From Dicyema japonicum (Eukaryota > Animalia > Dicyemida), in contig RDEW01000079.1 in the NCBI GenBank assembly GCA_011109175.1, positions 13,446 to 77,445 on the forward strand: 64,000 nt of DNA, read 5' to 3'. Both the position numbers and the translations under genes were made by a program. Within the stretch, counting starts at the first letter, position 1. Each line of letters starts with the position of its first letter. Positions 13,705 through 53,480 of the stretch are shown piece by piece. A model generated the notes under the pieces. It saw nothing but the letters and a program-made list of their open reading frames with translations. It ran no database searches and was not told the DNA's origin.

Positions 13705-16340
13705 TTAAAATAATAGTACTGGATGGTCCGCGGCCGATCCAGGAGAGGATGCCGAAGAGAGAATTGCGGACGGGGACCACGTGTCTGTGCACGTGGCGTC
13801 CCAGATCAGGCATTTACCGTTCCGGAATGGGAAGGTTGTCATCCCATCCGGGCGCTTGCCGTCCCCCCTGTCCAGACCGACTGGTTCGAGAACATTCGGG
13901 AAGCCGGCAGCATTCAGTGCTCTGGAGATAACGTCGTTGAGTGCCCCATGACGAGGCGAGCGGCCTGCGCTCCGGCGGCACGAGAGGGGGTGCAGCCCTT
14001 TCACATCCACCACTCCTCCGCAACGGCACCGATGAGGCGTGCAGATGTCGAGACCCAACCGGAGAGCAGTTCCAATCCGGAGGGTCTCGTCGTCCAACAA
14101 CGAGCCCGTTGATGCCGACGGAAATGCGTCGAGCCAGGAGCCACTGTGTTTCTGTGCTGCGGAGAGCAAGCACGCCAGGCGGTGTTGGTCCAGAAGGGGC
14201 TGTAGCGTTGAAAAGGACTGAGATGCCCAGATCTCGTCCCAATCTCTCTGTCTGGACATCTCAGAAGGGATTGGGAGGTTGGCGGCGGTCCAAAATTTTT
14301 GCAGGTCGTCGGCCGGTAAATCCAGAGAGAGTTCGTTGAAGGGGAGTAGAACCTCTCTGACAAGCTGACGGCTGCTGGAAACTGAGGAGAAGTGGGCATG
14401 CGGCGCCAGGTCTTTAGGCGAACGGAGGCCGATCCCTCCGAACCTGACGGGGAGTTTTCCTTGAGTCCAACCGATTTCGTCAAAGGCGATGTTCAGAACT
14501 GCTTCCGTGGACGATTTCAGCGAAGTTTCCATGGAAGATAGCATGTCAAGATGAGAGTAGCATGGCAGGCAGCGGAGCGTGTATAGCAGTTTCGGCATGT
14601 GCCTACTGCTTTTCATGAGGAAGAAGGCGATGTGCGAGTCTAGATTTAGAAGCCTGCTTGTGAGGTCACAGAATTCCAGGTCCTTCTTTACCAGGTGGGC
14701 CCTTAGGCCGCCGATGGGCTGAGAGGCAGCCGAGGAATGTGGCTTTGGACATGTTGGTAGTCTGGACTCCGGGGATAAGATCAGTTATTGATTTTCTCAG
14801 ATCGAGAAAATTTTCCTGAGGATAGTTGATATTCAAAAGCTCGCATTTTCCTTCATTTACTTTAATCCCGAGGTGTCTGAAAGGAGAGTTTAGAGATTAT
14901 ACGGCATCATTGATTGCGAAGACGAAAAGGAGGAGCTCGAGTGGGTCACCCTGCTGAACTACTGTCCGGGAGCGGACGACTTCGTTCTCAAAGATAAGCG
15001 TTCTTTCTTCGCCGTAGGAAAGGAAGACCAACTGGGCGATCTCCGGGGCCCTTTTAAGGCAAGCGTCGAAGATGCAATCTCTCCTTACACTGTTGAAAGC
15101 GTTGCGTAAATCGAGCTTCACAGCTGCGTGGGGGGAGTTGAGTGCTTTGTTAGAAAAGAAAATACTTCTGGCAGCGTGAACTGAGGCTTCGCAACCGTTG
15201 GCGATCCTCACCCCGAGTTGTTGAGGAGCAAATTCGAAGCTGAGGCGAGGGCATACACTCCTCGCAGCCAATTTAGCAGTCAGGCGGCGGAAGTAGTTTC
15301 CAACTGCTATAGGGCGGATTCCGCCGTCCTTTTTCCGGAATGTAAGAAGATGTGCCGAGAAGAGCATGTTCCTCGCAAAGTGGGGGATCTCACCGCTCAA
15401 TATCCTACCGGCTAGAGCGACTATTGCGGATATCAGGGTATTGCCTCCTTCTCTTGTTGAATGAGAGGTGAGGTCCTTGATGTGGCCCGGGCGTAAGCCA
15501 TCGAGCCTCCCGCAGCTGCTTTTCCCGAATGATTGGATTAAAATTCTGATTTCTTCTTCTGAGAAGTTGAGTGCGGAGGGTACAGATAGGCGAGTGATAG
15601 GTTGTACATCGAAGGGAGAATCCCGGTGTTTTTATCTCAGATGGGTATGGACATCATAAGTCGGTTTTAGCAAAGTTTCGTCGTTTGTGACTGTGCGAAT
15701 CACAGCTCGGACGCCACCTTCGGCTAGGTTGGTGCTGACACGTTCGTTCAAGGTGTTTTCCCTGCAGTGCGGAATGTTCTTTTTGTTCTTTTGGGGACGT
15801 TTGTAATTAGATTCTTGGAGGTTGATTGGTGCGAAGAGATTCTATTGACGTTCTCTTTGATCAATGTTAAGAGAGGAAGGGGGTTCCTCCCAGTGCGATA
15901 GGGATTCCGAGCGCATGAGGGGCAAAGCTGATTAGACGAGACCAAGCTTCGCAGCTGTCCGACGAAGGCCCATCGTTGATGAAGGAAGAGAGGCATGTGG
16001 CAATTTGTATCCTGGCGGACATGGAAATCCGTAGAGGAATTTTCAAAGAACCTCGAAACTTTAATAATTTGATGAGAAATGGGTTGACTTCCAGCGTATA
16101 TCCTCGTGTGAGAAAGACGAAGGCGAAGGAGCACTCCGTAGAGCATCCGATTGAAGTCTTTTGGATGAGAGGCATGAGGGACAAAGCAGGTTGGGAATCT
16201 CGATTGCGGCCTTTTCGAATTTTAAGGCAGCCGAGTGGAAATACTGCTGACAGATCGGGCATCTGAACCCGTTCTTCCTGGGAATGGAGGAGAGGCATTT
16301 CGTGCAGGGAACAGTATCATGTAGAACATCTTCCGGAACT
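13705..16340 (-). mobile_element. Near-full-length CRE-clade retrotransposon (PHD-like N-terminus, RT, C-terminal zinc motif, RLE); frameshifted and 3'-truncated
   Basis: RT: GGIRPIAVGNYFRRL, QQLGV..GCEA, KLDLRNAFNS, VQQGDPL, IWYLDD-type motif near 14840. RLE: CRCGGVVD...HPLSC, RHGALNDVI, GLDRGDGKRPDGMT, LIWDATCTDT. Confidence 0.92.
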
Positions 16341-36850: not shown

Positions 36851-39076
36851 CAGACCTTTGGTTGGTAGGCCCATAAACACGCATATTCGAGAATCACGTA
36901 CCCTGACCGTAAAGAGGAAATGTACTAAAGACACACTTGGTCGATGATTAACTACATATTTATCTAATTAAACCAATATAGACTTCTCTTTTCTCTGGTT
37001 TTGTCACAGTCCGTCCACCATATCATCACACAAAATTGATATGGACTCTAGACAAGTGTGCGCGGCACACCGTTTGACAACCTCTGGAGTAGACCCTCAG
37101 CTATCGTCAGGGAAATGAGTCCTACAAAAAAAGTTCTCTTGAAATACATCGACAAATCTAACCGCAATGCAGAGGATTATATTAAATCAATTCTGAATTA
37201 AAAGTGTTCATATTTAAGTGTAAAAATGCTTCTGTGTTTTTATCAAAAAAATAGCAGATCTCTACGTGTGTAGAACCAATCTACCTGCTTTTTTAAGGAC
37301 TAATCTATCGTATGCTGTTTGACTATATTAACTTGCTCGCCTTCTCTACATTTTTTTTTCACGTCAAGCTAAGAAATCATGTGACGTCGTCTTAAGATGT
37401 AGCACCAACTGTGCAGATGAGAAAATTAATTCATGAATTTAAAAATATAGTTATCTGTCAATTTTGCCGTTTTATAAGCTTTTTGGAATCAAAAATGGTG
37501 TCAGACCTCCCATATTCAACAATTTTTCCATAAAAAAACTTAAAAAAAAATTGAATTCTAGAATTTTTTCTTCCAGTAGGATTTTGAATCTGAGTTCATG
37601 CCTGGATTACAGGAAGAGGAGGACATTAAAAAGTTGAAAACAACAAAATCGACTAAAATGTGTCAAATAAGTCAAAAGTTGAGCTGTGAGTTCAAATGTT
37701 GTAGATGGACAGTACTAAGAAGATGGGTAGTTACAATATTCTCTGATTATCAAAGTGGAAAGCCGCAGCAAAATTACTTTTATCTAACACCTGGAAGCAG
37801 TTCTTATCCAAAGGCAACAAAAATGGTGAGGACAACCACTATTCATGCCAGTCCCATATACGAATCCTTGTTTAATGCATTATTATAAACTAGAGATCAA
37901 AAATCCAACAAAAAAGAAATAAACGTGAAATTTTAATAAAAATAGGCAAAAAATAGGCTTTTGTATAAAATCCAAAAGTATTAAATGGTTGAAAAAAAGA
38001 TTAAATTATTGTAAAAATAGACACAATTCAATTACAGAATATCGAATATTATATGAAATTCTGTAAGTCACCAATATATTTAATCAATTTTAATACGAAC
38101 ACAAACCATTAATATAATAGAACAAAATTTGATAAATAAAGAAAACAATGCACAACAAGAAACGAACCACGAGTAGTAACCTGGTAATCTTATTACATTT
38201 GGTTTTCCAGATAAAATTAACTATAATAAAATTAATATTTTATTATAATATAATTTAAATTATTCATTTCTGAGTTTGAGCTCGTGACATTAGTGGCAGA
38301 TTGTGTGGATTAGATTTATTGTTTCTGATGATGAATTCAAAGCACAAGTCAAAGAAATATCGAAAGACCTTATTATATCCCCTCAAATAATTTGCGCAAT
38401 TTAATACCCTGTGTTCCATCTGACGACACAGTTCAAAAAATTGCCTACATTTTTTAGATAATACACTAATTTTTAAAGATTTTTTAATTTGATAAGGAAG
38501 CTTAAATCACAAAAATGGTAATGTTCTAAAACAACTCAAATTTTAGCGCTAAGAAGCATATATCTTTTAATATAAATTATTGAAAATAATTATTTAAAAC
38601 TAAAAAAACGTTGATACAAAAGAGCAGATAAGGAGACTTGGATCACATACTAATCCTCTAGAGGATTACTCGACAGTGCCTTTATTTACAGAGCTTTTAT
38701 CGACAGAACATTTATCAAAAGAGCTTTTAGCTAAAAATGATATCAAGAGTTTCTTTGAAGGTCGTGGCATTGCTAGTTTCAAAAGAGCGGACCATGCCAC
38801 GGGGACGCTAGGAATGAATGCTAAAAATTTTCAGAAATCGAGTTATAATCATTATATATTTTCTATAAATATTAATGTTTTTGAATAAATAAAAATATCG
38901 AATTATTTTCATCAGCGTGTTCTGCATGCTGTTCTGTTGTTGTGGTGTTGCTTTTTTCGACATTTGATTATTATTTTTTATTCAACATTTTTTTAAAGAT
39001 AATTTTGTATATGCATTTTATTGCAGATTAAATATTGGGTACATGTAGAATATCTTGAAAAAAGTTATTTTACAAG

Positions 39077-39653
39077 TTAATTTGTGTCCATTGTATTAAT
39101 AATTTCAATTGAATGCATCTTTTTAAATAATATCTTTCCCATTTCTTTCAATTTAATGCATCTTTTTAAATAATATCTTTTTAAATAATATCTTTCTGGT
39201 AGTACATATATACAACAGTTATTGAGTGAGAGGTCTGTCAGATCCGTCAATTGGAAGAGAGGCCGAGGAAAACTATACGAATAAAGAGCCAAAAAAACAC
39301 AGAGAGTAGATTTGTGTCACAATTGAGTACCTTCACCTAACTACATTTTGACAACTCAACTGGGAGAGTGGAAAGCTCTAAAATACTTGAAAAAAGCCCG
39401 TCTATTTGTGCTTAGATTTAATTCTTCCAGATATTGTAGATTGCATATTGTGGGGGAAATAAATATATTTTGTGGGCATTTTACTGGTGTGAGGTGTGTT
39501 AGATGATTGAATCCTGTATCCAAGTGCTGGATATAGTACCCTGGAATATCTACGAGGGATGGCAGTGTTTCGAGGCACAGTCTATCTATGATGACTTGGT
39601 TTATTTGAGGTTTCTTTTTCTTGAAAGGAAAGCAGAGGAAAAATTTGTTCATT
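39077..39653 (-). pseudogene. LAP-family (Scribble/Erbin/LET-413-like) N-terminal LRR fragment, copy A
   Basis: MNKFFLCFPF...HLDTGFNHL...TICNLQYLEELNLSTN...LPVELSKC...VLNCDTN..SFPRPLFQLTDLTDLSLNNCCIYVLPE. In-frame stop and small intron-like gaps. Confidence 0.6.
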
Positions 39654-39741
39654 TTGTTATTTCTGAAATAATTTAAATAATAAACGCTACACCACAACAA
39701 CGATATTTTAGATAGCGGGTTTGTTATATTTATTTAAATTA

Positions 39742-41300
39742 TGTCACGGGTTGGATAATGCCCCGGATTGGATAATGCTCCCTCAACGTTATTTTAAAAA
39801 AATAAATATTTTTTCCAATTAATTTTTATTAGATTTTTGGATTCTCCTAATTATTTTTGTAATTTATTAAAGATTTTTTTTGAATTAATCTCGCGTGCAG
39901 ACTCGCTTTTGTTATCTAAATTTTCCAATTTGAAAAAATAATAAGTATTATAGATCAAATATATGTATATGAAATGGTATTACTAAAACTTACTAAAAAT
40001 GAACTTGACGAAATCCAAAAAATTCAATTAGATGTATTTTTTATTGACCGAATAGACAGATCTATAAAAAAAGATACAGAAAATTATCAGAACAGTTAAT
40101 TTTTGAAGACGACGACATAGTATACATAATATACAAAAACCAGAGATTACGCTTTTTTGCCGAAGAAGAAAATGAACTTAAGCTAAAAATTATTGAGGTT
40201 ATTGGTAAAAAGTTATTGTAGATTGAACACATGAGGACACATTTTGGAAGAGAAAAGTTACTTTCAATACTTCGAAATCAACTTTATTGTGTAACACGAG
40301 ACGATATTAATGCTGTTATCTCAAAATGTCTTCACTGTCAAGTTAATATGTTTCGAATTATTTGTAGTCAAAAAAGTTGATGGCTACTAAGCCCATAATT
40401 ACTCCTATAATTGCAAGACGACCTAGAGACCGCTATATTGCAGATTTGGTGGATTTAAGGAGGTATGCTAGCCTTAACAGCAATAATGGATGGGTATTTC
40501 CTTCTGAATTAATTTTAGTTGGTTGTAGTTATAGACTCCTTTTCTAAATTCGCAGTTGTTAAACTTTCCAGACGGAAATCAGCCGAGGAAATCACCAGGT
40601 AACTTAAGAATATTTTTTGATGATTAGTCCCCATTCATTCTACAAACGGATAATAGGAAAGAATTTAAGAACAGAGTTGTTGAAAATATGTGCAATGATC
40701 TAAAATCATTCACATATGCGGACGTCCTAGAGAACCATGGGTTCAGGGACAAGTAGAGAGGCAAGTTATTTGTAAATTTATCTTTAAATTTAATCAATCG
40801 ACTAAAAGGTAGATTAGCTCCATTACTGTGTCAAATGGGTCTTTTGGAAGCTATAAGGATTTTACCAAGAACTCGTATATAAATATAAAATGGCAAAGCA
40901 TGAAACGACCAAGAGGACACCTTTTGAAGTTTTTATGCGGGGAAATAATCTAATCCCAGAGGAAACAAAATCAGCGTTATTACTATTCGAAAGAAATGAA
41001 GCGGAGCAATTAAGTCAATCGGAATCAATTGGATCGGATTATTTTAAAAACGAGGAGGATTATTTGAATCAAGAAAGTGTGTATGATGTCCATGTTCTTG
41101 TCGGAGAAAAAATGAAAATAAGGCAGAAATGGAAATTTAATAAAAGATCTACAAGTAGGAGATAACGTTACTCAGATATGATATCGATGCAAATCCGAAT
41201 AATCGAAAATGCCCGTTATATGATCAAATCGATTCAACTATATACCAAATATCGGAAGTTGCTAAAGATACCTGCGAACTTAAGATATGAATGACGATTT
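39742..41300 (+). mobile_element. Ginger-like integrase element (subfamily A) with 25-27-nt introns; right end not found
   Basis: TGTCACGGGTTGGATAATG terminus. HMRTHFGREKL..CLHCQ|, DRYIADLVDL, GW|LVVVIDSFSKF, LQTDN.KEFKN, QVE|RFNQ. Introns 40342-40367, 40494-40518, 40761-40787. Confidence 0.82.
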
Positions 41301-41539
41301 ATTTAAAAATGTACACAGAAGTCGTCTGAAAAAAGTTTTAGATAATAAAAAATTTTGAATTTTTTATATTTGTTTTTAAACGGAGAACCTAAAAAAGAAA
41401 AATTGGTCATGTGTGTTTTGCCGACTCTTGGTAAAATTCATTCAATCAAAAAATTGATAAAAAAAATAATAATTCGATTTAATTCCATTATCAAGTTATT
41501 TTTAATTAATTATCATCAAAACAATACAACATATTCATT

Positions 41540-42349
41540 CTCGCGTGTTGTTCTTGTAGTGCTTTTTTCTGTCATTTGTTATTTGCCATTTATCGTTCCT
41601 ATCTTTAATCTTTCTTATCGATTACTCTCTGTTCTGTCTGTAACTCTTGTAACAAAAGGAAGAAAACAATCCGTTGCGACTGCTGTGACGCCAGTTTTCA
41701 TCTTTCATGCATCAAGTTGTCTAAGAAGTCTGCTTTATCTCTTAATCGTTGGGTTAGGGCCGAGGCTGGAAACTGTCTGTCGACGGTCTCCGTCCCATTC
41801 ACTTAATCGACCTCACTTCCGATACTGCCGAGGCTGGAAACTGTCTTTCTCAATCCATCACCAAGCTATGTAACTTATTTCTCCGTGGGGATATATCTGA
41901 GCATGCTAGATTGCTTTTCTTCTCTGCGAACCTGACAGCATTGGGGAAAAAAGACGGCGGCATTCGGCCTATTGCCGTCGGGAACGTTTTCCGTCGTTTG
42001 TTTGCTAAAGTCGGATGCAAGCTGGTAATTCCATCTATTAGTGACGAACTCTAGCCCATTCAGTTGGGCGTTGGCGTATCTGGCGGGTGTGAGGCCTCGG
42101 TCCACGCATCCCGGTGTTTTATTGAATCGTCCCGCCTTTCTGAACAGCCCCGGCTATTATTAAAATTGGATGTTAAGAATGCGTTCAATTCTCTCAACAG
42201 AGAGCATCTACTTGAGGTTTGTAAAGACAGAATTCCTTCATTGCTGCCATTTGTTTTCTTTCATATGGGTAACCGAGCCTTTTGGCTGCCGGTGATTCCT
42301 TTATTTCTTCTTCTTGCGGTGTACAGCAAGGTGACCCTTTTGGGTATTA
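41540..42349 (+). mobile_element. CRE retrotransposon 5' half (PHD finger, internal deletion, RT to QQGDP)
   Basis: CSVC..IRCDCCDASFHLSC..RW; DGLRPIHL; GGIRPIAVGNVFRRL; QLGVGVSGGCEA; KLDVKNAFNS; GVQQGDP. Confidence 0.9.
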
Positions 42350-44156
42350 TGTGACATGGGCAGCGCGTTACGCATGGGCCGCGCGTTACATTTTTTGACA
42401 TTGAAACTGTCAAATATAGAATTCTTTGATTAGCCGAAATTTAAATTTTTATAGTGAAAAATATATTAAATTAATCGATTTCAAACATGTTAAATTATCT
42501 TTAATTTATTAATGTTACAATTATTAAGATTTAAATTTTTTAACTTCGCAAACCTACATTTCTAGCGTGTTTTTTATCTTGTTTTATCTTGTTGTAAGGA
42601 GTTCTTACAAAGGTTTTGTAAAAACATTATCGAATATGAGATTTTAAAGGATGCGTTGGCTGGTAAATTTCCAGAAAATTTTTCGAGCAGCAAAAATATA
42701 GGCTTGCCAATAAAATAGAGAATTTTACTATCATCAATGAAAGGTATTTTGAATGCGTAATAAGTTTCAGATTGTATCTTAAATCCGCTGATCCAAGTTA
42801 GTCATTACTCTGGATAATGAATCTGAAATGCTGCTTGTTGCAAAAACATTGCACGAGTATTCTCACGGAGGAGTGAATAAAATTGAATATCAGTGTCGAC
42901 AAAGCTACTTTACTGTAAAGAATGACATAATCAGAAAAGTAATTCGAAATTGTCAAGTCTGTAAATTTTCACGTCCTTTAAAAGTTTCACGCATTTTTTA
43001 TTGTAGATTGGAGATATAAATCACCATGTTCTTGCTTCTTGTCCTAATGAACGTTTCAGATAGATCTTATAGACTTAAAAAGATTTTCAACTGTTAATCA
43101 TGATTTTAAATTGATTTTAACGGTCATTGATGTCTATAGCAGGTTGGTTAGTTAAAACAATCTTTATAGATTTGCCTTCGCCAGGCCTCTTTATAATAAG
43201 TCAGGCAAAGAAGTATCGGAAAATTTAAAATCCTTATTTTATTTAAACGGCCAATGTCAAATTCTTCAGTCAGATAATGGTCTGAGTTTAAGAATCAGGA
43301 AATAAAGACAATCCACGACACAGGGGATTGTAGAGAGATTCAACCAAACTTTAACAAGAAAGTTATCAAAAATGCTTGATAACAGCGAGAAAAAGTGGAT
43401 AGTGGAATTAGAAAAATGTGTGTACAGTTATAACATCTCTGTACATTCATTTTCTAATGAGAGCCCCTTTGAAAAATATAGGGAATTAAGGGAATAAATC
43501 CAATAATTGATGGTTATATATATAATTATGTTTTAGATGATTCAAATGATTGTTCTATTTCAGAGCAAATGGAAGATTCATTAGATTGTTCAACTCCAGA
43601 GAGCGTAGAAAATTTGCGTAATCCAATTTAAAATATATACGTAGATAATTCCGAGTCAGAATGTTCCTATCCGGATCCAAAAAAATTCAAATTTTATAAG
43701 GAAACCCATTGGTGAAACTTCTAATTATTACAAAGCTATGAACAGGAAAATGAATGTTCATAATAGTAAGTATGATTATAATGTCGGTGATAAAGTAAGA
43801 AATAAAAAAAATTAATAAATAGATTCGAATTAAAAAAATTTTGGAACTAATCCATCGTTGCGACTAAATAAATTCGAATCACAGTACTATCCACCAGCTG
43901 AAATATAAATATTTTATCGAATAATCGCGTAGAGGTAGTTTTAAGTTTATTTATTTAATAGATTAAACACTCAAATGGGAAAAGTCTATAGTCGGGATGG
44001 ACAGGATTAAAAAACTTAATTAATTAATTATTTTTGTGGTTGATAATTAAATAATAAGATTGTTTGAAGTTTATCGATAAATTGACAGATACATCAATAA
44101 TAAGATTGTTTGAAGTGTAACGCGCATCCCATACGTATCATTTGGCCCATGTCACA
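42350..44156 (+). mobile_element. Complete-span Ginger-like DNA transposon (subfamily B): 41-bp imperfect TIRs, TATTA TSD, intron-containing integrase pseudogene
   Basis: TGTGACATGGGC...GCCCATGTCACA; tatta at 42345-42349 and 44157-44161. H2C2 motif (HEYSHGG..CQVC), ILTVIDVYS|R, LQSDNG, QGIVERFNQTL, YNVGDK|I. Introns 42744-42770, 42984-43006, 43143-43169, 43795-43822. Confidence 0.9.
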
Positions 44157-45700
44157 TATTATTCGCCCTTTCCGTAGATTTTGTTGCACGTAAGAATTCG
44201 TCGCCTCTTAATATTTGGTATTTGGATGATTGTACTATCGGTGGTCCGCCCGATATTTTACTAAACGACTTGAATCTCTAATCCCAGCTTTGTCATCCAT
44301 TGGTCTTGAAATTAATTCTCTAAATCTGAAATTGTAAATCTTAACATCGATCGTGTCAGCTTTGGAAACATTTGTGATCATTTTCGAGGCCTTTTCCCGA
44401 TCTGAGGCATACTTCTACTGCTGATCTCGAAATCTTGGGTGCTCCGATCCACGACCAATCCGCCATCCGTATTCTTAATTCCAAGAGGAATGCCCTTTCT
44501 TCTCTTTGTGATAAACTTGAAGATATTGATCCCCACCCTGCTTATTTCATTCTCAAAAATTATCTTCTGATCCCGAAAATCAATTATGTCCTAAGGAGTT
44601 CCCGCTGCTTTTCTATCCCTACTGCTTTGGATTCTTTCGACGCTCTGGTGCGTTCTTCTGCTGAGAAGATTTTTAACGTCAAGTTTGATGACGTTGGTTG
44701 GTGTCAGGCCAAGCTTCCTGTTCCTTTTGGCGGTCTGGGGCTTCGCTCCGCGCTCGACCTTTCTCTTCCCGCTTTTCTTTCATCTTCTTCAGGATTGTAT
44801 CTTCTTGTCCATAAGATTCTTGAAAAATCACCCGAATCAATTTGGACTCTGATATCAATTCTGCACTCTTGCTTTGGAAAGAAAAGGATTTCGTCTTACC
44901 GTCAGAGCGATCTCTCCAACGTGAATGGGACAAAATTATTTGTGGACATTATGTTGACTCGCTGGAGCGTCTCTTGGACCAGCACAGACTAGCTTGTTTC
45001 CGTGCCAGTCGCCAACCCTATTCTGGCTCTTGGCTTAACTGCCTTCCCACGACCCATTTGGATACCTGCCTCGACTCTGATGCCCTCCGTTTTGGAATAT
45101 GCCTTCGCCTCGGACTACCGACGTGTAACCCCCACCCCTGCCGGTGTGGATCAATGATGGACACATACGGGCTCCATGCTCTTTCCTGCAAGAAAAGCGC
45201 AGGTCGTATTCCTCGTCATTCGGCTCTTAACAAGATCATTCTCGAGGCCCTCGAAAAGGCAGGGTATCCTTCTGTCCTTGAGCCAATTGGCCTCGACCGT
45301 GGTGATGGAAAAAGGCCTGATGGCTCTACATTGTCCCTTTCGACACTGGTAAACCATTAGTTTGGATGCCACGTGTGTTGATACCTTTTCCAAGTCGGCC
45401 ATCAACGAATCCGCCTCCTTGCCCGAGTCTGGTGCTTATAAAGCTGAATCTTCTAAATTCAAAAATATCAGCGCCTGTTAGACGGCTTTTGGTTTTGGCC
45501 AATTGTTGTTGAGACTTCGTGTGTCTTTGTGTCTTTGGCTCAAAGACAGTCAATTTTGCGGCGAAACCGACTAGCATCTGGTGCGAGCTTGTGTGGGCTC
45601 GTGGGAAGATCACCGAGCGAGAATGAAGTACCTGGTGGAGTGCATCGGGATCACGTGACTATTTTTTCGGTTTCTACCGTGGTCTTGGTGATTAAATAAA
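44157..45700 (+). mobile_element. CRE retrotransposon 3' half (RT remainder, zinc motif, RLE)
   Basis: LLFALSVD..NIWYLDDCTIGG, ILGAPI, QAKLPVPFGGLGLRSA, CRCGSMMDTYGLHALSC, GLDRGDGKRPDG. Confidence 0.9.
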
Positions 45701-45955
45701 TATATAAACAGCAAAGGTAAAAGGATGACAGTCTGTATCTTGGCCCCGACCTTTGATTGGTAGGCCCCATAAACACGCATATTCGAGAATCACGTACCCT
45801 GACCGTAAAGAGGAAATGTACTAAAGACACACTTGGTCGATGATTAACTACATATTTATCTAATTAAACCAATATAGACTTCTCTTTTCTCTGGTTTTGT
45901 CACCAGTCCGTCCCACCCATATCATCACACAAAAATTGATATGGACTCTAGACTG

Positions 45956-46177
45956 GAACATCAGTCCTAGCTTTTCTCCACTTCCATTGTTGGCCTACGA
46001 TCTAGGAATTCGATTCCCATCTCCACGATAACAATCTTCTTGGTGACCTAATCGTAGACCACAATGTCGGGTTCGTTGTACTGGACAACAGTCGAGGTGC
46101 ATAATGTGGTGTCCATTATACGTTCAAGCTCCCATACACCGATTGAACTGGATGAGTCCACAACTTTCTGCCAACTT
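45956..46177 (-). mobile_element. R4/Dong-like RLE fragment flanked by a 9-bp direct repeat
   Basis: DTTLCTSTVVQYNEPDIVVYD.VTKKIVIVEMG; tctagactg at 45947-45955 and 46178-46186. Confidence 0.65.
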
Positions 46178-46955
46178 TCTAGACTGCCAATTTTTAAGAC
46201 CGTCTTTATTTTTAAATAAATTCGAGAACCACTGATATAGACATTACGAATACATTAAAACAAAATATAGGACGGTCCCAGTGTTAATGTCTACAAAAAA
46301 GTTCTCTTGAAATATATCGACAAATTTAACCGCAATGCAGAGGATTATATTAAATCAATTTTGAATTAAAGGTGTTCATATTTATGTGTTAAAATGTTTC
46401 TTTGTTTTCATCAAAAAAATAGCGAGATCTCCACGTGTGTACAACCAATCGACCTGCTTTTTTAAGGACTAATCTATCGTATGCTGTTTGACTATATCAA
46501 CTTGTTCGGCCTCCTCTACATTTTTCTTCCACGTCAAGCTAAGGAATCATGTGACGTCGTTTTAAGATGTAGCACCAACTGTGCAGATGATAAAATTAAT
46601 TAATGAATTTAAAAATATAGTTATCTGTCAATTTTGCCGTTTTATAAGCTTTTTGGAATCAAAAATGGTGTCAGACCTCCCATATTCAACAATTTTTTCA
46701 TAAAAAAACTTTAATAAAAAATTGAATTCCAAGAATTTTTTCTTCCCAGTAAGGATTTTGAATCTGAGTTCATGCCTGGATTACAGGCAGAGGAGGACAT
46801 TGCCAAGTTGAAAACAACAAAATCAACTAAAATGTGTCAAATAAGTCAAAAGTTGAGCTGTCAGTTCAAATGTTTGTAGATGGACAGTTCTAAGAAGATG
46901 GGTAGTTACAATATTCTCTGATTTATCAAAGTGGAAAGCCGCAGCAAAATTACTT

Positions 46956-48159
46956 GCTCGCTGGAACTGCCACTGTTGTATGGCTTCATTCAGAATCGTG
47001 GCCTCACAGCATCAAGCTTGTCGTGTGGCACATAAGTCTCCTTCGCTTCATGAACCCAAATCAGAACATTATATTCTCAAAATTTCCAATCTACGGAAAT
47101 CTAAGAAAATACCATTACAGATCCCTAAACAGGCTCGGATGTATGCGGCAAACTGCTTAAGCGATCTTATCACTGATGCGCTAAGCTCCGGGGAATACCC
47201 TTCTTGGATCCGTATTCTCTCCTTTGTACATTGTGTTCTTGGACAAGCAATTTATGGTTCAGTACAAAAGCAGAGCCTCTCGGCTGCCATTAACTCGAAC
47301 TCTGCGAGACTGGACGTCTCATGGATTGACTACGTTTGGGATGCGAGCAATTACCAAACGTGCATTAAGGAAAAATCCCGTCAGTGGTTCAAAACCCAAG
47401 TCAGTCGTAAACTCATAGATGGCGACATCCGTGTGGCCGTTCGGTTATTTTCTTCCGATGATTCACTTGCTGAATCTACTGCTGAGACTTTGGAACACCT
47501 CAAAAACAAACATCCGATGCCCCAGATAACTTACGGAAGTTTCCCACACAAGACAACGCTCTTATATTGTCAATTTCTAAAGATGAAATCTTGGAAGGGA
47601 TTAAATCTTTCAGACCGAGTAGCAGTGGAAGATTTAATGGTCATATAAAGCACATAATTTCTCGATTGACTACGGAAGCTGGAACCCGCTTGATCAAGTG
47701 TATTACCAGACTTGTCGAACGGATCATCAAAGCTGAGTTCCTAGGCTTGGCTAGAGATCTCCTTTTCTATTCACACCTGATTGCTTTCCGAAAAAATGAC
47801 GGAAGAGTGCGCCCCATTGCAGTCGGTAATGTCTTTCGGAGGCTCACGTGCAAAATTGCAGCCCGAAGAGTCTGTCCCTGCATCAAAACTAGCTGATATT
47901 CTATTAAAAAGATGGAAAAACAATTCATTTTGAAATAGAAGTTTATTTTTAACATTTAATTAAGAGAAATTCGAAACAACCATTTTCTGCGTCCGTTTCC
48001 GAGAAAAAGTAGTCTTTGCTGCTGACTCCAGAAAAACGTGGAATCAGCACGATATCTACACTGAAAGTATTTATTTTTATTAAATTCCCATTTCCCGCTC
48101 ATCCCTAATGAAATTATCCACAATTCATGAAGCCACCAACAGATTAATTAGCCGGAACC
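46956..48159 (+). mobile_element. CRE 5' fragment (PHD tail to RT start) plus AT-rich filler, present only in unit B
   Basis: RWNCHCC, IPKQARMYAANCL, GDIRVAVRL, GRVRPIAVGNVFRRL. Interrupts aaattactt|tttatctaac, which is contiguous in unit A near 37770. Confidence 0.85.
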
Positions 48160-49426
48160 TTTTATCTAACACCCTGGAAGCAGTTCTTATCCAAAGGCAA
48201 CAAAAATAATGAGGACAACCACTATTCATGCCAGTCCCATATACGAATCCTTGTTTAATGCATTATTCTAAACTAGAGATCAAAAATCCAACAAAAAAAA
48301 ATAAACGTGAAATTTAAATAAAAATAGGCAAAAAATAGGCTTTGTATAAAATCCAAAAAGTATTAAATGGTTGAAAAAAAGATTAAATTATTGTAAAAAT
48401 AAAACGAATTCAATTACAGAATATCGAATATTATATGAAATTCTGTAAGTCAACAATATATTTAATCAATTTTAATACGAGTATTAACCATTCATATAAG
48501 AAAACAAAATTAGATAAACAAATAAAACAATGCACAACAACAAAACGAAGCACGAGTAGTAACGTGGTTATCTTATTACATTAGGTTTTCCAGATAAAAT
48601 TAAATACAATAAAATGATTATTTTAATATAATATAATTAAAATCATTTATTTTTGAATTTGAGCTCGTGAGATTAGTGCCAGATTGTACGGATTAAATGT
48701 TTTGTTTTTGATGTTGAATTCAAACACAAATCAAAGAAATATCAAAAGACGTTATCATGTCCCCTCAAATAATTTGCGAGATATAATACCCTGTGTTATT
48801 ATCTCACGGCGCAGCTCAAGAAATTGCTTACATTTTTTAGATAATAAACTAATTTTTAAAGATTTTTTAATTTGATAAAGAAGCTTAAATCACAAAAATG
48901 ATAATGTTCTAAACAACTCAAATTTTAGAGGATATAATTTTAATATAGAATTTATCGTTGACAGTGTTATCCTTATACGAGGATTATTCGACAGTGCTTT
49001 ATTTACAGAGCCTTTATCGACAGAACTTTTATCAAAAGAGCTTTTAGCTAAAAATGATATCAAGAGTTTCTTTGAAGGTCGTGGCATTGCTAGTTTCAAA
49101 AGAGCGGACCATGCCACGGGGACGCTAGGAATGAATGCTAAAAATTTTCAGAAATCGAGTTATAATCATTATATATTTTCTATAAATATTAATGTTTTTG
49201 AATAAATAAAAATATCGAATTATTTTCATTAGCATGTTCGACATGCTGTTCTGTTGTTTTGGTGTTGATTTTTTCGACATTTGATTATTATTTTTTGTTA
49301 GACATTTTTTTAAAGATAATTTTGTATATGCATTTTATTGCAGATTGAATATTGTGTACATGTAGAATTTTTTGAAAAAAGTTATTTTACAAGTTAATTT
49401 GTGTCAATTGTATTAATAATTTCAAT

Positions 49427-49973
49427 TTAATGCATCTTTTTAAATAATATCTTTCCCATTTCTTTCAATTTAATGCATCTTTTTAAATAATATCTTTTTA
49501 AATAATATCTTTCTGGGAGTACATATATACAACAGTTATTGAGTGAGAGGTCTGTCAGATCCGTCAATTGGAAGAGAGGCCGAGGAAAACTATACGAATA
49601 AAGAGCCAAAAACAACACAAAGAGTGGATTTGTGTCACAATTGAGTACCTTCACCTTACTACATTTTGACAACTCAACTGGGAGAGTGGAAAGCTCTAAA
49701 ATACTAGAAAAAAGCCCGTCTATTTGTGCTTAGATTTAATTCTTCCAGACATTGTAGATTGCATATTGTTGGGGGAATAAATATATTTTGTGGGCATTTT
49801 ACTGGTGTGAAGTGTGTTAGATGATTGAATCCTGCATCCAAGTGCTGGATATAGTACCCTGGAATATCTACGAGGGATGGCAGTGTTTCGAGGCACAGTC
49901 TATCTATGATGACTTGGTTTATTTGAGGTTTCTTTTGCTTGAAAGGAAAGCAGAGGAAAAATTTGTTCATTTT
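49427..49973 (-). pseudogene. LAP-family LRR fragment, copy B
   Basis: ORFs 49704-50018 and 49427-49672 are near-identical to copy A. Confidence 0.6.
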
Positions 49974-50059
49974 GTTATTTCTGAAATAATTTAAATAATA
50001 AACGCTACACCACAACAACGATATTTTAGATAGCGGGTTTGTTATATTTATTTAAATTA

Positions 50060-51600
50060 TGTCACGGGTTGGATAATGCCCCGGATTGGATAATGCTCCC
50101 TCAACGTTATTTTAAAAAAATAAATATTTTTTCCAATGAATTTTTATTAGATTTTGGATTCTCCTAATTATTTTTGTAATTTATTAAAGATTTTTTTTGA
50201 ATTAATCTCGCGTGCAGACTCGCTTTTGTTATCTAAATTTTCCAATTTGAAAAAATAATAAGTATTATAGATCAAATATATATTTCAGAAATGGTTTTAC
50301 TCAACCTTACTAAAAATGAACTTGACGACATCCAAAAAATTCAATTAGATGTATTTTTTATTGACTGATTTGAAAAATCTTTAAAAAAAGATACAGAAAA
50401 TTATCAGAACAGTTAATTTTCGAAGACGAACGAAGGGATAGTATACATAAAATACAAAAGCCTGAGGTTACGCTTTTTCCCCCAAGAACAAAAGGAACTT
50501 AAACTAAAAACTATCGAGCTGATTGTTACATAATCATTTTAGATTGAACATATGAGGACACATTTTGGAAGAGAGAAGTTGCTTTCGATGCTGAGGAAGG
50601 AAATTTAAGCAGTAACCCGAGACGAAATTACTGCTGTGATCTCAAAATACGTTCTCTGTCAGGTGCATATGCATTGAATTATTTGTAGTAAAAAAAGTTG
50701 ATGGCGACTAAGCCAACAATTACTCCTATTATTGCAAGAGGGCCTAAAGATCGCTATATTGCAGATTGGGTGGATTTAAGAAGGTATGCTAGCCTTAATA
50801 GCGATAATGGATGGGTATTCCTCTCTGATTTAATTGTAGTTGGTTGTGGTTATAGATTCATTTTCCAAATTCGCAGCTGTAAAACTTGCCAGACAGAAAT
50901 CCGCGGAGGAAATTACGAAAAAATTAAGCAATATTTTTTTGATGATTGGTCCCCATTAATTCTACAGACGGATAATGGGAAAGAATTTAAGAACAAATGT
51001 ATGGAAACAATGTGTAATGATTTAAAATCATACACATAAGTGGACGTCCTAAAGCACCATGGATTCAGAATCAAGTAGAGAGGCAAGTTATTTGTAAATT
51101 TATCTTTAGATTCAATCAATCGATCAAAAGCTCCACTAGTGCGTCAAATGGGTCATTTGGAAGCTATAAGTATTTTTACCAAGAAAGCGTATATAAATAT
51201 AACATGGCAAAGCATGAAACAACCAAGAGGACACATTTTGTAGTTTTTATGCGGGGAAATAATCTAATCCCGGAGGAAACAAGATCAGCGTTATTACTAT
51301 TCGAAGGAAATGAAGTGGAGGAATTAAGTCAATCGGAATTAATTGGATCGGATTATTTCGAAAACGAGGACGATTATTTGAATCAACAAAGTGTGTATGA
51401 TAGCCATGTTCTTGTCGGAGAAAAAAATGAAAAGGAGGCCGAAATGAAGATCTACAAGTAGGAGATAATGTGTTACTCAGACATGATATCGATGCAAATC
51501 CGAATAATCGAAAATACCCGTTATATGATCAAATCGATTCAACTATATACCAAATATCGGAAGTTGCTAAAGATCCGCGAACTTAAGATATGAATGACGA
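50060..51600 (+). mobile_element. Ginger-like element subfamily A, copy B
   Basis: Same terminus; introns 50663-50688, 50815-50839 and GC-AG 51083-51109. Confidence 0.82.
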
Positions 51601-51839
51601 TTTATTTAAAAATGTACACAGAAGTCGTCTGAAAAAAGTTTTAGATAATAAAAATTTTTGAATTTTTTATATTTGTTTTTAAACGGAGAACCTAAAAAAG
51701 AAAAATTGGTCATGTGTGTTTTGCCGACTCTTGGTAAAATTCATTCAATCAAAAAATTGATAAAAAATATAATAATTCGATTTAATTCCATTATCAAGTT
51801 ATTTTTAATTAATTATCAGCAAAACAATACAACATATTC

Positions 51840-52656
51840 ATTCTCGCGTGTTGTTTTTGCGGTGCTTCTTTCTGTCATTTGTTATTTGCCATTTATCGTT
51901 TCTATCTCTAATCTTCATTATCGATGACTCTCTGTTCTGTTTGTAACACTTTTAACAAAAAGAAGAAAACCATCCGTTGCGACTGCTGTGATGCCAGTTT
52001 TTCATCTTTCTTGCATCAAGTTGTCCAAGAAGTCTGCTTCATCTCTTACTCGTTGGGTTAGGGCCGAGGCTGGAAAACTGTCTGTCGACGGTCTCCGTCC
52101 CATTCACTTAATCGACCTCATTTCCGATACTGCCGAGGCTGGAAACTGTCTTTCACAATCTATCACCAAGCTATGTAACTTATTTCTCCGTGGGATATAT
52201 CTGAGCATGCTAGACTGCTTTTCTTCTCTGCGAACCTGACAGCATTGGGGAAAAAAAGACGGCGGCATTAGGCTATTGCCGTCGGGAACGTTTTCCGTCG
52301 TTTGTTTGCAAAAGTCGGATGCAAGCTGGTAATTCCATCTATTAGTGACGAACTCTAGCCCATTCAGTTGGGCGTTGGCGTGTCTGGCGGGTGTGAGGCC
52401 TCGGTCCACGCATCCCGGTGTTTTATTGAATCGTCCCGCCTTTCTGAACAGCCCCGGCTATTATTAAAATTGGACGTTAAGAATGCGTTCAATTCTCTCA
52501 ACAGAAAGCATCTACTTGAGGTTTGTAAAGACAGAATTCCTTCATTGCTGCCATTTGTTTTTCTTTCATATGGGTAAACCGAGCCTTTTGGCTGCCGGTG
52601 ATTCTTTATTTCTTCTTCTTGCGGTGTACAGCAAGGTGACCCTTTGGGTATTATGT
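51840..52656 (+). mobile_element. CRE 5' half, copy B (PHD finger with intact ATG at 51924)
   Basis: MTLCSVCNTFNKKKKTIRCDCCDASF..LSCIKLSKK..TRW, then RT motifs. Confidence 0.88.
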
Positions 52657-52988
52657 GACATGGGCAGCGCGTTACGCATGGGCCGCGCGTTACATTTTTT
52701 GACATTGATACTGTCAAATTAGAATTCTTTGATTAGCCGAAATTTTTATAGTGACAAAAATATATTAAATTAAATCGATTTCAAACATGTTAAATTATCT
52801 TTAATTTATTAATGTTACAATTATTAAGATTTAAATTTTTTAACTTCGCAAAACCTACATTTCTAGCGGTCTTGTTTATCTTGTTGTATCTTTTTGTATT
52901 CGAATATGAGTTAGATCTTGTTTATCTTGTTGTAAGGAGATCTTACAAAGGTTTTGTAAAAGACATTATCGAATATGAGATTTTAAAG
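52657..52988 (+). mobile_element. Left end of Ginger-like subfamily B, copy B
   Basis: TGTGACATGGGCAGCGCGTTACGCATGGGCCGCGCGTTACA after tatta. Confidence 0.85.
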
Positions 52989-53480
52989 NGAGTGTGGGTC
53001 ACAAAGGACTTCCATTTGGTCGTCAATAGAAGGAATATATTGAAGGCTTTTGAGGACCAGACAGTAATGCTAATCATATATTCCACAATCATTATATTAG
53101 GAGTTATTTTGATTACGCACACCTTTTCAAAGTAAGCAATTCTCTGGGTTATTAAATAGAAAATTCCCGATAACGTATCAGGAAATAGTCTGTGGAATAA
53201 ATAGATTTGTATTAAATATTTATCGACTATTTATGGCATGTAAAAAGTTTATTACAAGAAAAAAGTCGAAACAAAAAAAGATATAATAACATTTTCAAAA
53301 AATATATACTTTACTTAAATTAACAAGCTAAATAAGTACTAATTGCGTACCAAAAAATTAATTTTAACCTTGAGTAAGGCACTTACCTGCCTCTGGCTTT
53401 CCGGTAGTGCTGCTTTTTTTTAACCTTGAGTAAAACATAGTATTCCTTTACTTCGAGGAGAATTTCTCATGTACAAGTTC

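Follow-up and report, generated by a model that had tools for sequence, protein, structure and literature searches.

A PHD finger at the N-terminus of RLE-type non-LTR retrotransposons in Dicyema japonicum

The retrotransposon R2 carries zinc-finger and Myb DNA-binding domains at its N-terminus, and elements with a restriction-like endonuclease (RLE) such as R2 have been studied and engineered since these N-terminal DNA-binding domains set the place of insertion. Classical members of the CRE clade target spliced-leader (SL) genes or telomeres. Here we analyse a stretch of 64,000 nucleotides from the dicyemid Dicyema japonicum (assembly GCA_011109175.1, contig RDEW01000079.1, positions 13,446 to 77,445 of the forward strand), hereafter the window, in which a preliminary description had proposed that a CRE-clade retrotransposon with an RLE starts, at 41621-41755, with a PHD finger that may read histone marks.

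All known CRE elements make target-site duplications and target deletions come with most R2-clade insertions (PMC3636483), while HERO is an RLE clade with many families that lack target specificity (PMC4640811). PHD fingers are an established accessory domain of transposable elements: PMC8557442 (citing Kapitonov and Jurka 2003) and PMC2836005 place them in CR1/L2 open reading frame (ORF) 1, the Ginger1 transposase, Rehavkus and the Chlamys Penelope-like elements (PLEs). The D. japonicum genome, 67.5 Mb in 377 scaffolds, consists for 49% of repeats; its description mentions elements of the present kind only as copies of 'LINE-1 ORF2 protein' (PMC6736024).

We conclude that the flagged stretch is very probably the N-terminal PHD of a dead copy of a single-ORF, RLE-type retrotransposon of the kind lacking long terminal repeats (non-LTR). 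When intact, such an element would consist of a C4HC3 PHD, a helical linker of ~270 residues, a reverse transcriptase (RT), a thumb, a CCHC knuckle and an RLE of the PD-(D/E)xK type. By analogy with R2 it would move by target-primed reverse transcription (TPRT), and the PHD would take the N-terminal place that zinc-finger and Myb domains hold in R2.

Architecture, ends and clade of the family

The complete genome (67,542,437 bases in 377 contigs) was searched and all tests were performed on natural copies with their frames as they stand; copy statistics derive from 46 short loci. An RT query gave more than 3,300 first-look candidates and the PHD piece at least 150. Gap-free, uninterrupted natural ORFs were found at two loci, L044:715-3615 (967 residues, contig C316) and L037 (contig C20). 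These intact sister families have PHD, linker of ~270 residues, RT, CCHC and RLE in one frame of ~970 residues, hence the finger is contiguous with RT and RLE in natural intact copies.

In the L044 ORF the PHD is complete (residues 11-56); it scores 27.0 bits when the whole ORF is scanned and 32.4 bits when a piece of 64 amino acids is scanned alone. In full-length scans of the L037, C31 and C75 sister families it stays under the gathering threshold. The RT is recognised as RVT_1 at residues 331-560 (E=6.5e-19). The C-terminus reads CRCG...H...C, followed by RH, GKRPDG, WDATCVD and a conserved K, and in an alignment of the C-terminal domain from 59 sequences positions C31, C33, H43, C47, R56, H57, R89-P90-D91, D107 and K137 are invariant. 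An AlphaFold model of this domain has a predicted local distance difference test score (pLDDT) of 91.3, and its best seven Foldseek matches in the PDB are all R2 proteins (R2Tg, R2Pm and R2Bm; E 4e-6 to 8e-4), with generic PD-(D/E)xK nucleases behind them. The corresponding sequence profile reaches only E=0.4 to R2Bm, with the match at the CCHC/RH motif.

The N-terminal 345 residues of L044 were modelled as the PHD plus a helical extension of the RT (AF2; pLDDT 85.6 overall, 92-96 across the finger). PHD fingers rank first among the Foldseek matches of the finger, led by AL1 (5y20; template modelling score (TM) 0.84, root mean square deviation 1.2 A) and followed by Pygo, PHF2/8, TAF3 and BPTF, the TM by target ranging over 0.6-0.84. 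An aligner independent of Foldseek likewise returned PHD fingers over residues 3-63 (Z 5-7.3); its sole non-PHD rows were three LINE-1 ORF2p entries matching the RT at residues 90-345 (Z 6.3). Neither the Pfam scan of the L044 ORF nor the structure search with its N-terminus found an apurinic/apyrimidinic endonuclease (APE; Exo_endo_phos), Myb or C2H2/zinc-finger domain. The L044 ORF contains all these domains, its C-terminus matches R2 and its finger has a PHD fold; the element is therefore a non-LTR retrotransposon of the RLE type whose polyprotein carries a genuine PHD at its N-terminus. Thus the RLE-type assignment of the preliminary description is borne out by RT, CCHC, nuclease residues and structural matches to R2, and the two checks it had suggested, the PF00628 profile and structure prediction, applied to natural ORFs, returned a PHD above threshold and a PHD fold.

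The L044 family comprises at least ten loci that share 93-99% identity with L044, and nine reach 96% or higher; such closeness indicates that the family was active recently. Its elements measure ~3.03 kb, have a leader of ~80 nt and lack a poly(A). Ten sampled 5' junctions share one start nucleotide (L044:636, CACGTTGTGTCG...), preceded by 3-7 variable bases that look untemplated (GAAA, AAAA, CTG); this sample was drawn with the PHD query and therefore cannot show how frequent 5' truncation is. The 3' ends scatter over a few tens of bases. Unrelated AT-rich sequence borders the ten 5' junctions (nine independent sites, as L029 and L030 share flanks) and four 3' junctions, and specificity for SL genes or telomeres is absent at these sampled junctions. 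Direct repeats flank both copies for which two ends are available: 10 bp (TTCTTACATT) at L044, for which the chance of a 10-mer match is roughly estimated at ~0.01, and ~15 bp with one indel at L026. By analogy with R2 such ends would fit TPRT in which the second strand is cut at a staggered position and the target is not defined by sequence. Together with nested and dispersed superfamily fragments within the window, the varied AT-rich flanks agree with the dispersed insertions noted earlier, at the level of the superfamily.

A phmmer search of the family RT against the PDB, where only R2 and L1 represent such elements, matched R2 at E=6e-5. The family is not R2 proper, because this similarity is so low and because the R2-type N-terminal domains are absent. 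As to the clade, we tentatively consider HERO, or an RLE lineage without a name, a credible home. Non-specific insertion resembles HERO, and animals and environmental eukaryotes contain a large, diverse superfamily with a variable set of N- and C-terminal domains (PHD, SAP, OTU and ubiquitin C-terminal hydrolase (UCH)). Membership of CRE in the strict sense of RT phylogeny, next to CRE1/2, SLACS, CZAR and MoTeR, is possible, with some doubt. It agrees with the putative target duplications of two copies here, given that all known CRE elements make such duplications (PMC3636483), with the single ORF of RLE-type architecture and with the weak sequence similarity to R2. Counting against it are the absence of SL-gene or telomere specificity and the N-terminal PHD, where CRE elements are described with C2H2 fingers. 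Moreover, it is for HERO instead that many non-specific families have been described (PMC4640811).

The window locus and its duplicate

The frame at 41609-41803 (+) of the window translates to ITLCSVCNSCNKRKKTIRCDCCDASFHLSCIKLSKKSALSLNRWV, in exact agreement with the preliminary description. This 65-aa piece matches the Pfam PHD profile PF00628 with E=1.2e-6 and 28.8 bits, compared with a gathering cut-off of 24, and it remains under the Pfam thresholds of the C1, RING and NSD-type PHD models. The match covers profile positions 1-36 of 47: the first six zinc ligands and the conserved W are retained, the final Cys pair is gone. Here too, Pfam score, predicted fold and conserved ligands uphold the proposed C4HC3-type finger ahead of the RT. 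The parts of this copy, copy 1, are as follows.

41606 to 41620, + strand: 5' end of the element copy, with a short leader before the start-codon position (similarity to the independent copy on contig C37 begins at 41606)
41621 to 41755, + strand: N-terminal PHD fragment with C-x2-C, C-x2-C, x4-H-x2-C and W, last CxxC deleted (translation; Pfam PHD)
41756 to 41777, + strand: junction of the ~900 bp internal deletion, with a second copy of GCCGAGGCTGGAAACTGTCT (comparison with C359)
41778 to 42350, + strand: RT pre-domain and first half of the RT, with GGIRPIAVG, LKLDVKNAFNS and GVQQGDP (tblastn with L044 residues 281-468; DNA identity to C359)
42351 to 44155, unstranded: DNA transposon that splits the RT and is not part of the retrotransposon (inverted termini; gap in the RT alignment)
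44156 to 45529, + strand: second half of the RT, thumb, CCHC, RLE and 3' end, degraded (tblastn with L044 residues 467-915; three-frame translation; C37 copy)

Four copies of the window family were seen in the genome, two in the window and one each on contigs C359 and C37. The closest independent copy, locus L031 on C359, shares 93% identity with window 41652-41755 (L031 5596-5699) and 97% with window 41778-42041 (L031 6599-6862). Between these two blocks, hence between PHD and RT, ~900 bp of C359 (L031 5700-6598) are absent from the window copy. A single frame of C359 spans both the PHD and the RT pre-domain, with ...CDCCDASLHRSCIKLSKKSASSLTRWVCSTC followed by a linker of ~330 residues with an internal duplication and then by GGVDGLRPIHL...GGIRPIAVG; the last CxxC is supplied where the frame continues as ...RWVCSTC. 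The internal deletion inferred earlier, with loss of the last CxxC, is therefore substantiated. Its junction carries an extra copy of the 20-nt string GCCGAGGCTGGAAACTGTCT, which recurs further downstream at ~41828-41847, and this second copy suggests a microhomology-type rearrangement.

The RT pre-domain and first RT half are read in another frame than the PHD (41758-42351, +) which contains one in-frame stop, at 42052-42054; near 42270 the frame changes. The inserted transposon measures ~1.8 kb and has inverted termini GTGACATGGGC / GCCCATGTCAC, with TATTAT on its flanks. Directly beyond it the tblastn alignment resumes, L044 residue 468 being followed by residue 467, and proceeds with several frameshifts and stops via WYLDD, thumb, CCHC and GKRPDG...D.TC.DT to ~45519. 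A 3' truncation of the RT at 42350 was thereby ruled out. The C37 copy is differently deleted: the equivalent of window 42176 is joined directly to that of 45464 and similarity stops at 45529. Therefore both RT halves belong to one family and the 3' end is marked.

Both window copies and the C37 copy are defective, and the ORF of C359 enters a stretch of N. Both window copies are dead; the locus is an ordinary dead copy and its value lies in the family. Its history includes the loss of ~900 bp between PHD and RT, a later insertion of the DNA transposon into the RT and the accumulation of stops and frameshifts; it was then duplicated together with ~10 kb of surrounding sequence, be it in a genuine tandem duplication or merely through assembly redundancy.

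That last step concerns the second copy, at 51924, which the preliminary description had taken for a duplicate. A second copy is indeed present, and it starts with an intact ATG (MTLCSVC) as described; the C37 copy has ATG at this position as well, and copy 1 has ATT. A separate insertion was ruled out, since the copy sits inside a block of ~10.3 kb in which 37.3-42.65 kb is repeated at 46.5-52.99 kb, with 92.6% identity overall (1.65 kb) and 97-99% in blocks. The block reaches ~330 bp into the transposon that splits the RT and breaks off where a single N stands at 52989; repeat spacing is 9170 versus ~10300, with an extra fragment in the second unit. It could be either a tandem duplication or an unmerged allele or haplotype, that is, assembly redundancy, the latter because its end falls exactly on the single-N gap at 52989. 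A weaker third repeat unit lies near 27.3 kb, the tandem span being window 37339-52989. The remaining superfamily members in the window are listed below.

51909 to 52059, + strand: copy 2 of 5' end and PHD fragment, with ATG at 51924 and a +1 frameshift (1-nt insertion) after CDCCDAS (alignment, translation)
52084 to 52654, + strand: copy 2 of the front part of the RT (tblastn)
13708 to 16339, - strand: near-full-length, frameshifted copy of a sister family, with PHD at 16339-16064, RT at 15631-14900 and CCHC-RLE at 14784-13708 (tblastn); 77-97% aa identity to the C20 copy L037
46935 to 47890, + strand: part of a further superfamily member, comprising linker and beginning of the RT (~1.1 kb), present in the second duplicated unit only (tblastn)

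The PHD finger across relatives and its role

Protein relatives were collected with a word-indexed search (1,200 matches among 8,000 scored candidates), of which the best 120 were examined. They derive mostly from ENA, JGI and Logan contigs of element length. CCHC and RPD are present in 113 of these 120, and 46 have the strict C4HC3 motif ~770 residues upstream of CCHC/RPD and thus already carry the same PHD; many of those lacking the motif begin later and may be truncated predictions. An alignment of 47 N-termini with 28-38% identity shows conservation of at least 90%, up to invariance, for the eight zinc ligands C11, C14, C26, C29, H34, C37, C53 and C56 and for W51; this Trp, which precedes the final Cys pair, occurs in 45 of 47. 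PF00628 is matched by all 50 aligned N-termini (E up to 0.01) and the family profile finds Alfin-like first in the PDB (E=4.7e-11), together with PHF2, BPTF, TAF3 and Pygo.

A FastTree of the RT-to-RLE region (126 rows), to be read with care given the quick method and midpoint root, has PHD-bearing rows dispersed over its larger half (45 of 88) and one subclade of 35 rows mostly without the finger. The Dicyema families fall inside one well-supported clade of 24 rows, alongside environmental sequences. Clusters of ~100-200 members annotated PHD and RVT_1 occur in the ESM Atlas, one with a cnidarian record. Altogether the PHD-RT-RLE lineage extends over Dicyema, sequences labelled Octopus, Lepidoptera, barnacle and many environmental eukaryotes. 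To judge from the conserved ligands, the spread over the tree and the abundant database relatives, the architecture is old and common in sequence databases. The novelty that the preliminary description had considered is limited: a full-text literature search, with Repbase and Dfam outside its scope, found no paper that combines a PHD with CRE, HERO, NeSL or RLE elements, but the architecture itself is abundant in protein databases.

Some relatives, 1,300-1,600 residues in length, additionally have a UCH (PF00443), and in others accessory matches are to OTU, SAP, RFX and a nuclear-receptor zinc finger (P0007, P0009, P0030, P0034, P0060, P0077 and P0113). Accessory domains look modular in this lineage.

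Octopus is the host of dicyemids (PMC6736024). The best database match of the Dicyema element is a protein labelled 'Octopus sinensis' with 89% aa identity (GCA_006345805.1, VCDQ01010770.1). Within that 43 kb contig only a 5'-truncated element of ~2 kb (L047:5963-7940) matches the Dicyema genome, with 84-89% nt identity, and its flanks have no match there. In the RT tree, another protein with an Octopus label (59% identity, from a contig of 668 kb) branches within the lineages of Dicyema. These matches could stem from dicyemid contamination of the host assembly or from horizontal transfer between parasite and host.

What the finger contributes was considered with regard to the proposal that it reads a histone mark, for example H3K4me3 or H3K4 in its unmodified state, and thereby directs insertion to chromatin with that mark instead of to a DNA target, which we regard as unlikely. 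The closest folds and profiles are H3K4me2/3-binding PHDs (Alfin-like, Pygo, PHF2/8, TAF3 and BPTF), no further N-terminal DNA-binding domain appeared in Pfam scan or structure search, and insertions are dispersed. However, the positions equivalent to the aromatic cage of known readers are not conserved. The cage was mapped with profile alignments and the presumed cage residues of BPTF and PHF2: among 50 sequences, an aromatic residue stands two positions ahead of the His, a place aligned with the cage of H3K4me3 readers, in 13, and ahead of the first and third Cys in 1 and 0-3, respectively. With cage positions aromatic in at most 26% of 50 relatives, the finger does not classify with the H3K4me3-reading subclass.

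Histone-tail readers are typically acidic. The finger has a conserved basic first loop, N-x-R-K-[RK], and its net charge from first to last Cys is positive in all 50 sequences (+1 to +9, mean +5), which on general grounds would be unfavourable for binding the basic H3 tail. Both observations speak against the histone-mark reading suggested in the preliminary description. A non-specific tether to nucleic acid or to an acidic chromatin or nucleosome surface, or an aid to nuclear import, would be more likely than specific methyl-mark reading, given the strongly basic character of the finger and the poor conservation of its methyl-lysine cage positions. The broader idea, that an RLE lineage swapped sequence-specific DNA-binding domains for a PHD that would tether the integration complex to a chromatin feature, be it a histone tail state or the nucleosome surface, is doubtful.

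That the Cys and His residues form a pattern by chance, or that the motif is a treble-clef finger of another type (C1 or RING) or a host exon joined by chance or misassembly can be dismissed, since the Pfam matches to C1_1 and RING are sub-threshold and only the PHD model exceeds its cut-off, the predicted fold matches PHDs, the Trp precedes the last Cys pair almost throughout, and more than 45 diverged relatives, taken from other sources, have this domain in the equivalent position.

Returning to a dead copy of an RLE-type element with a basic, probably non-reading PHD, a number of points weigh against this account. The cage mapping depends on profile alignments and on presumed cage residues of BPTF and PHF2, and H3K4me2/3 readers are the closest matches of the finger in both structure and profile, which leaves room for histone binding. 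In several of the longest copies, stretches of N cover part of the RT or RLE (L031 6863-8432, L033 6964-8378 and L032 4147-4693, among other loci); they obscure integrity and inflate open-frame lengths. Target duplications come from two copies only and lie in low-complexity, AT-rich DNA, and the case for activity is built from sequence.

An R2-like RT-RLE core with a conserved PHD and non-specific insertion constitutes a natural experiment in target choice, and the lineage could offer a module for chromatin- or nucleosome-directed TPRT. Chromatin-guided targeting, if true, would extend from LTR elements with their chromodomains to target-primed reverse transcription. The family further illustrates what a very small parasite genome rich in repeats is largely filled with.

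Comparison with known systems

With R2 (R2Bm, R2Tg) the family shares the single ORF and, behind the RT, both the CCHC knuckle and an endonuclease of the PD-(D/E)xK type. It differs from R2 in the PHD at the N-terminus, where no zinc finger or Myb was detected, in the lack of site specificity for ribosomal DNA and in its putative target duplications (two copies), compared with the target deletions of the R2 clade (PMC3636483). CRE and HERO were compared by description only. The CRE clade resembles the family as RLE-type elements; its members make target-site duplications (PMC3636483), and putative ones flank two copies here, whereas the family inserts at varied AT-rich sites. HERO resembles it as an RLE-type, metazoan clade with families lacking target specificity (PMC4640811).

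The fingers of Alfin-like, PHF2/PHF8, BPTF, TAF3 and Pygo proteins agree with that of the family in fold, ligand spacing and conserved Trp; in contrast, their aromatic cage is unconserved in the family, whose finger is basic. Finally, in other PHD-bearing transposable elements the finger belongs to ORF1 (APE-type LINEs), to the transposase (DNA transposons) or to the RT/endonuclease protein (PLEs), whereas here the PHD forms the N-terminus of an RT-RLE polyprotein and is inherited across a large clade.

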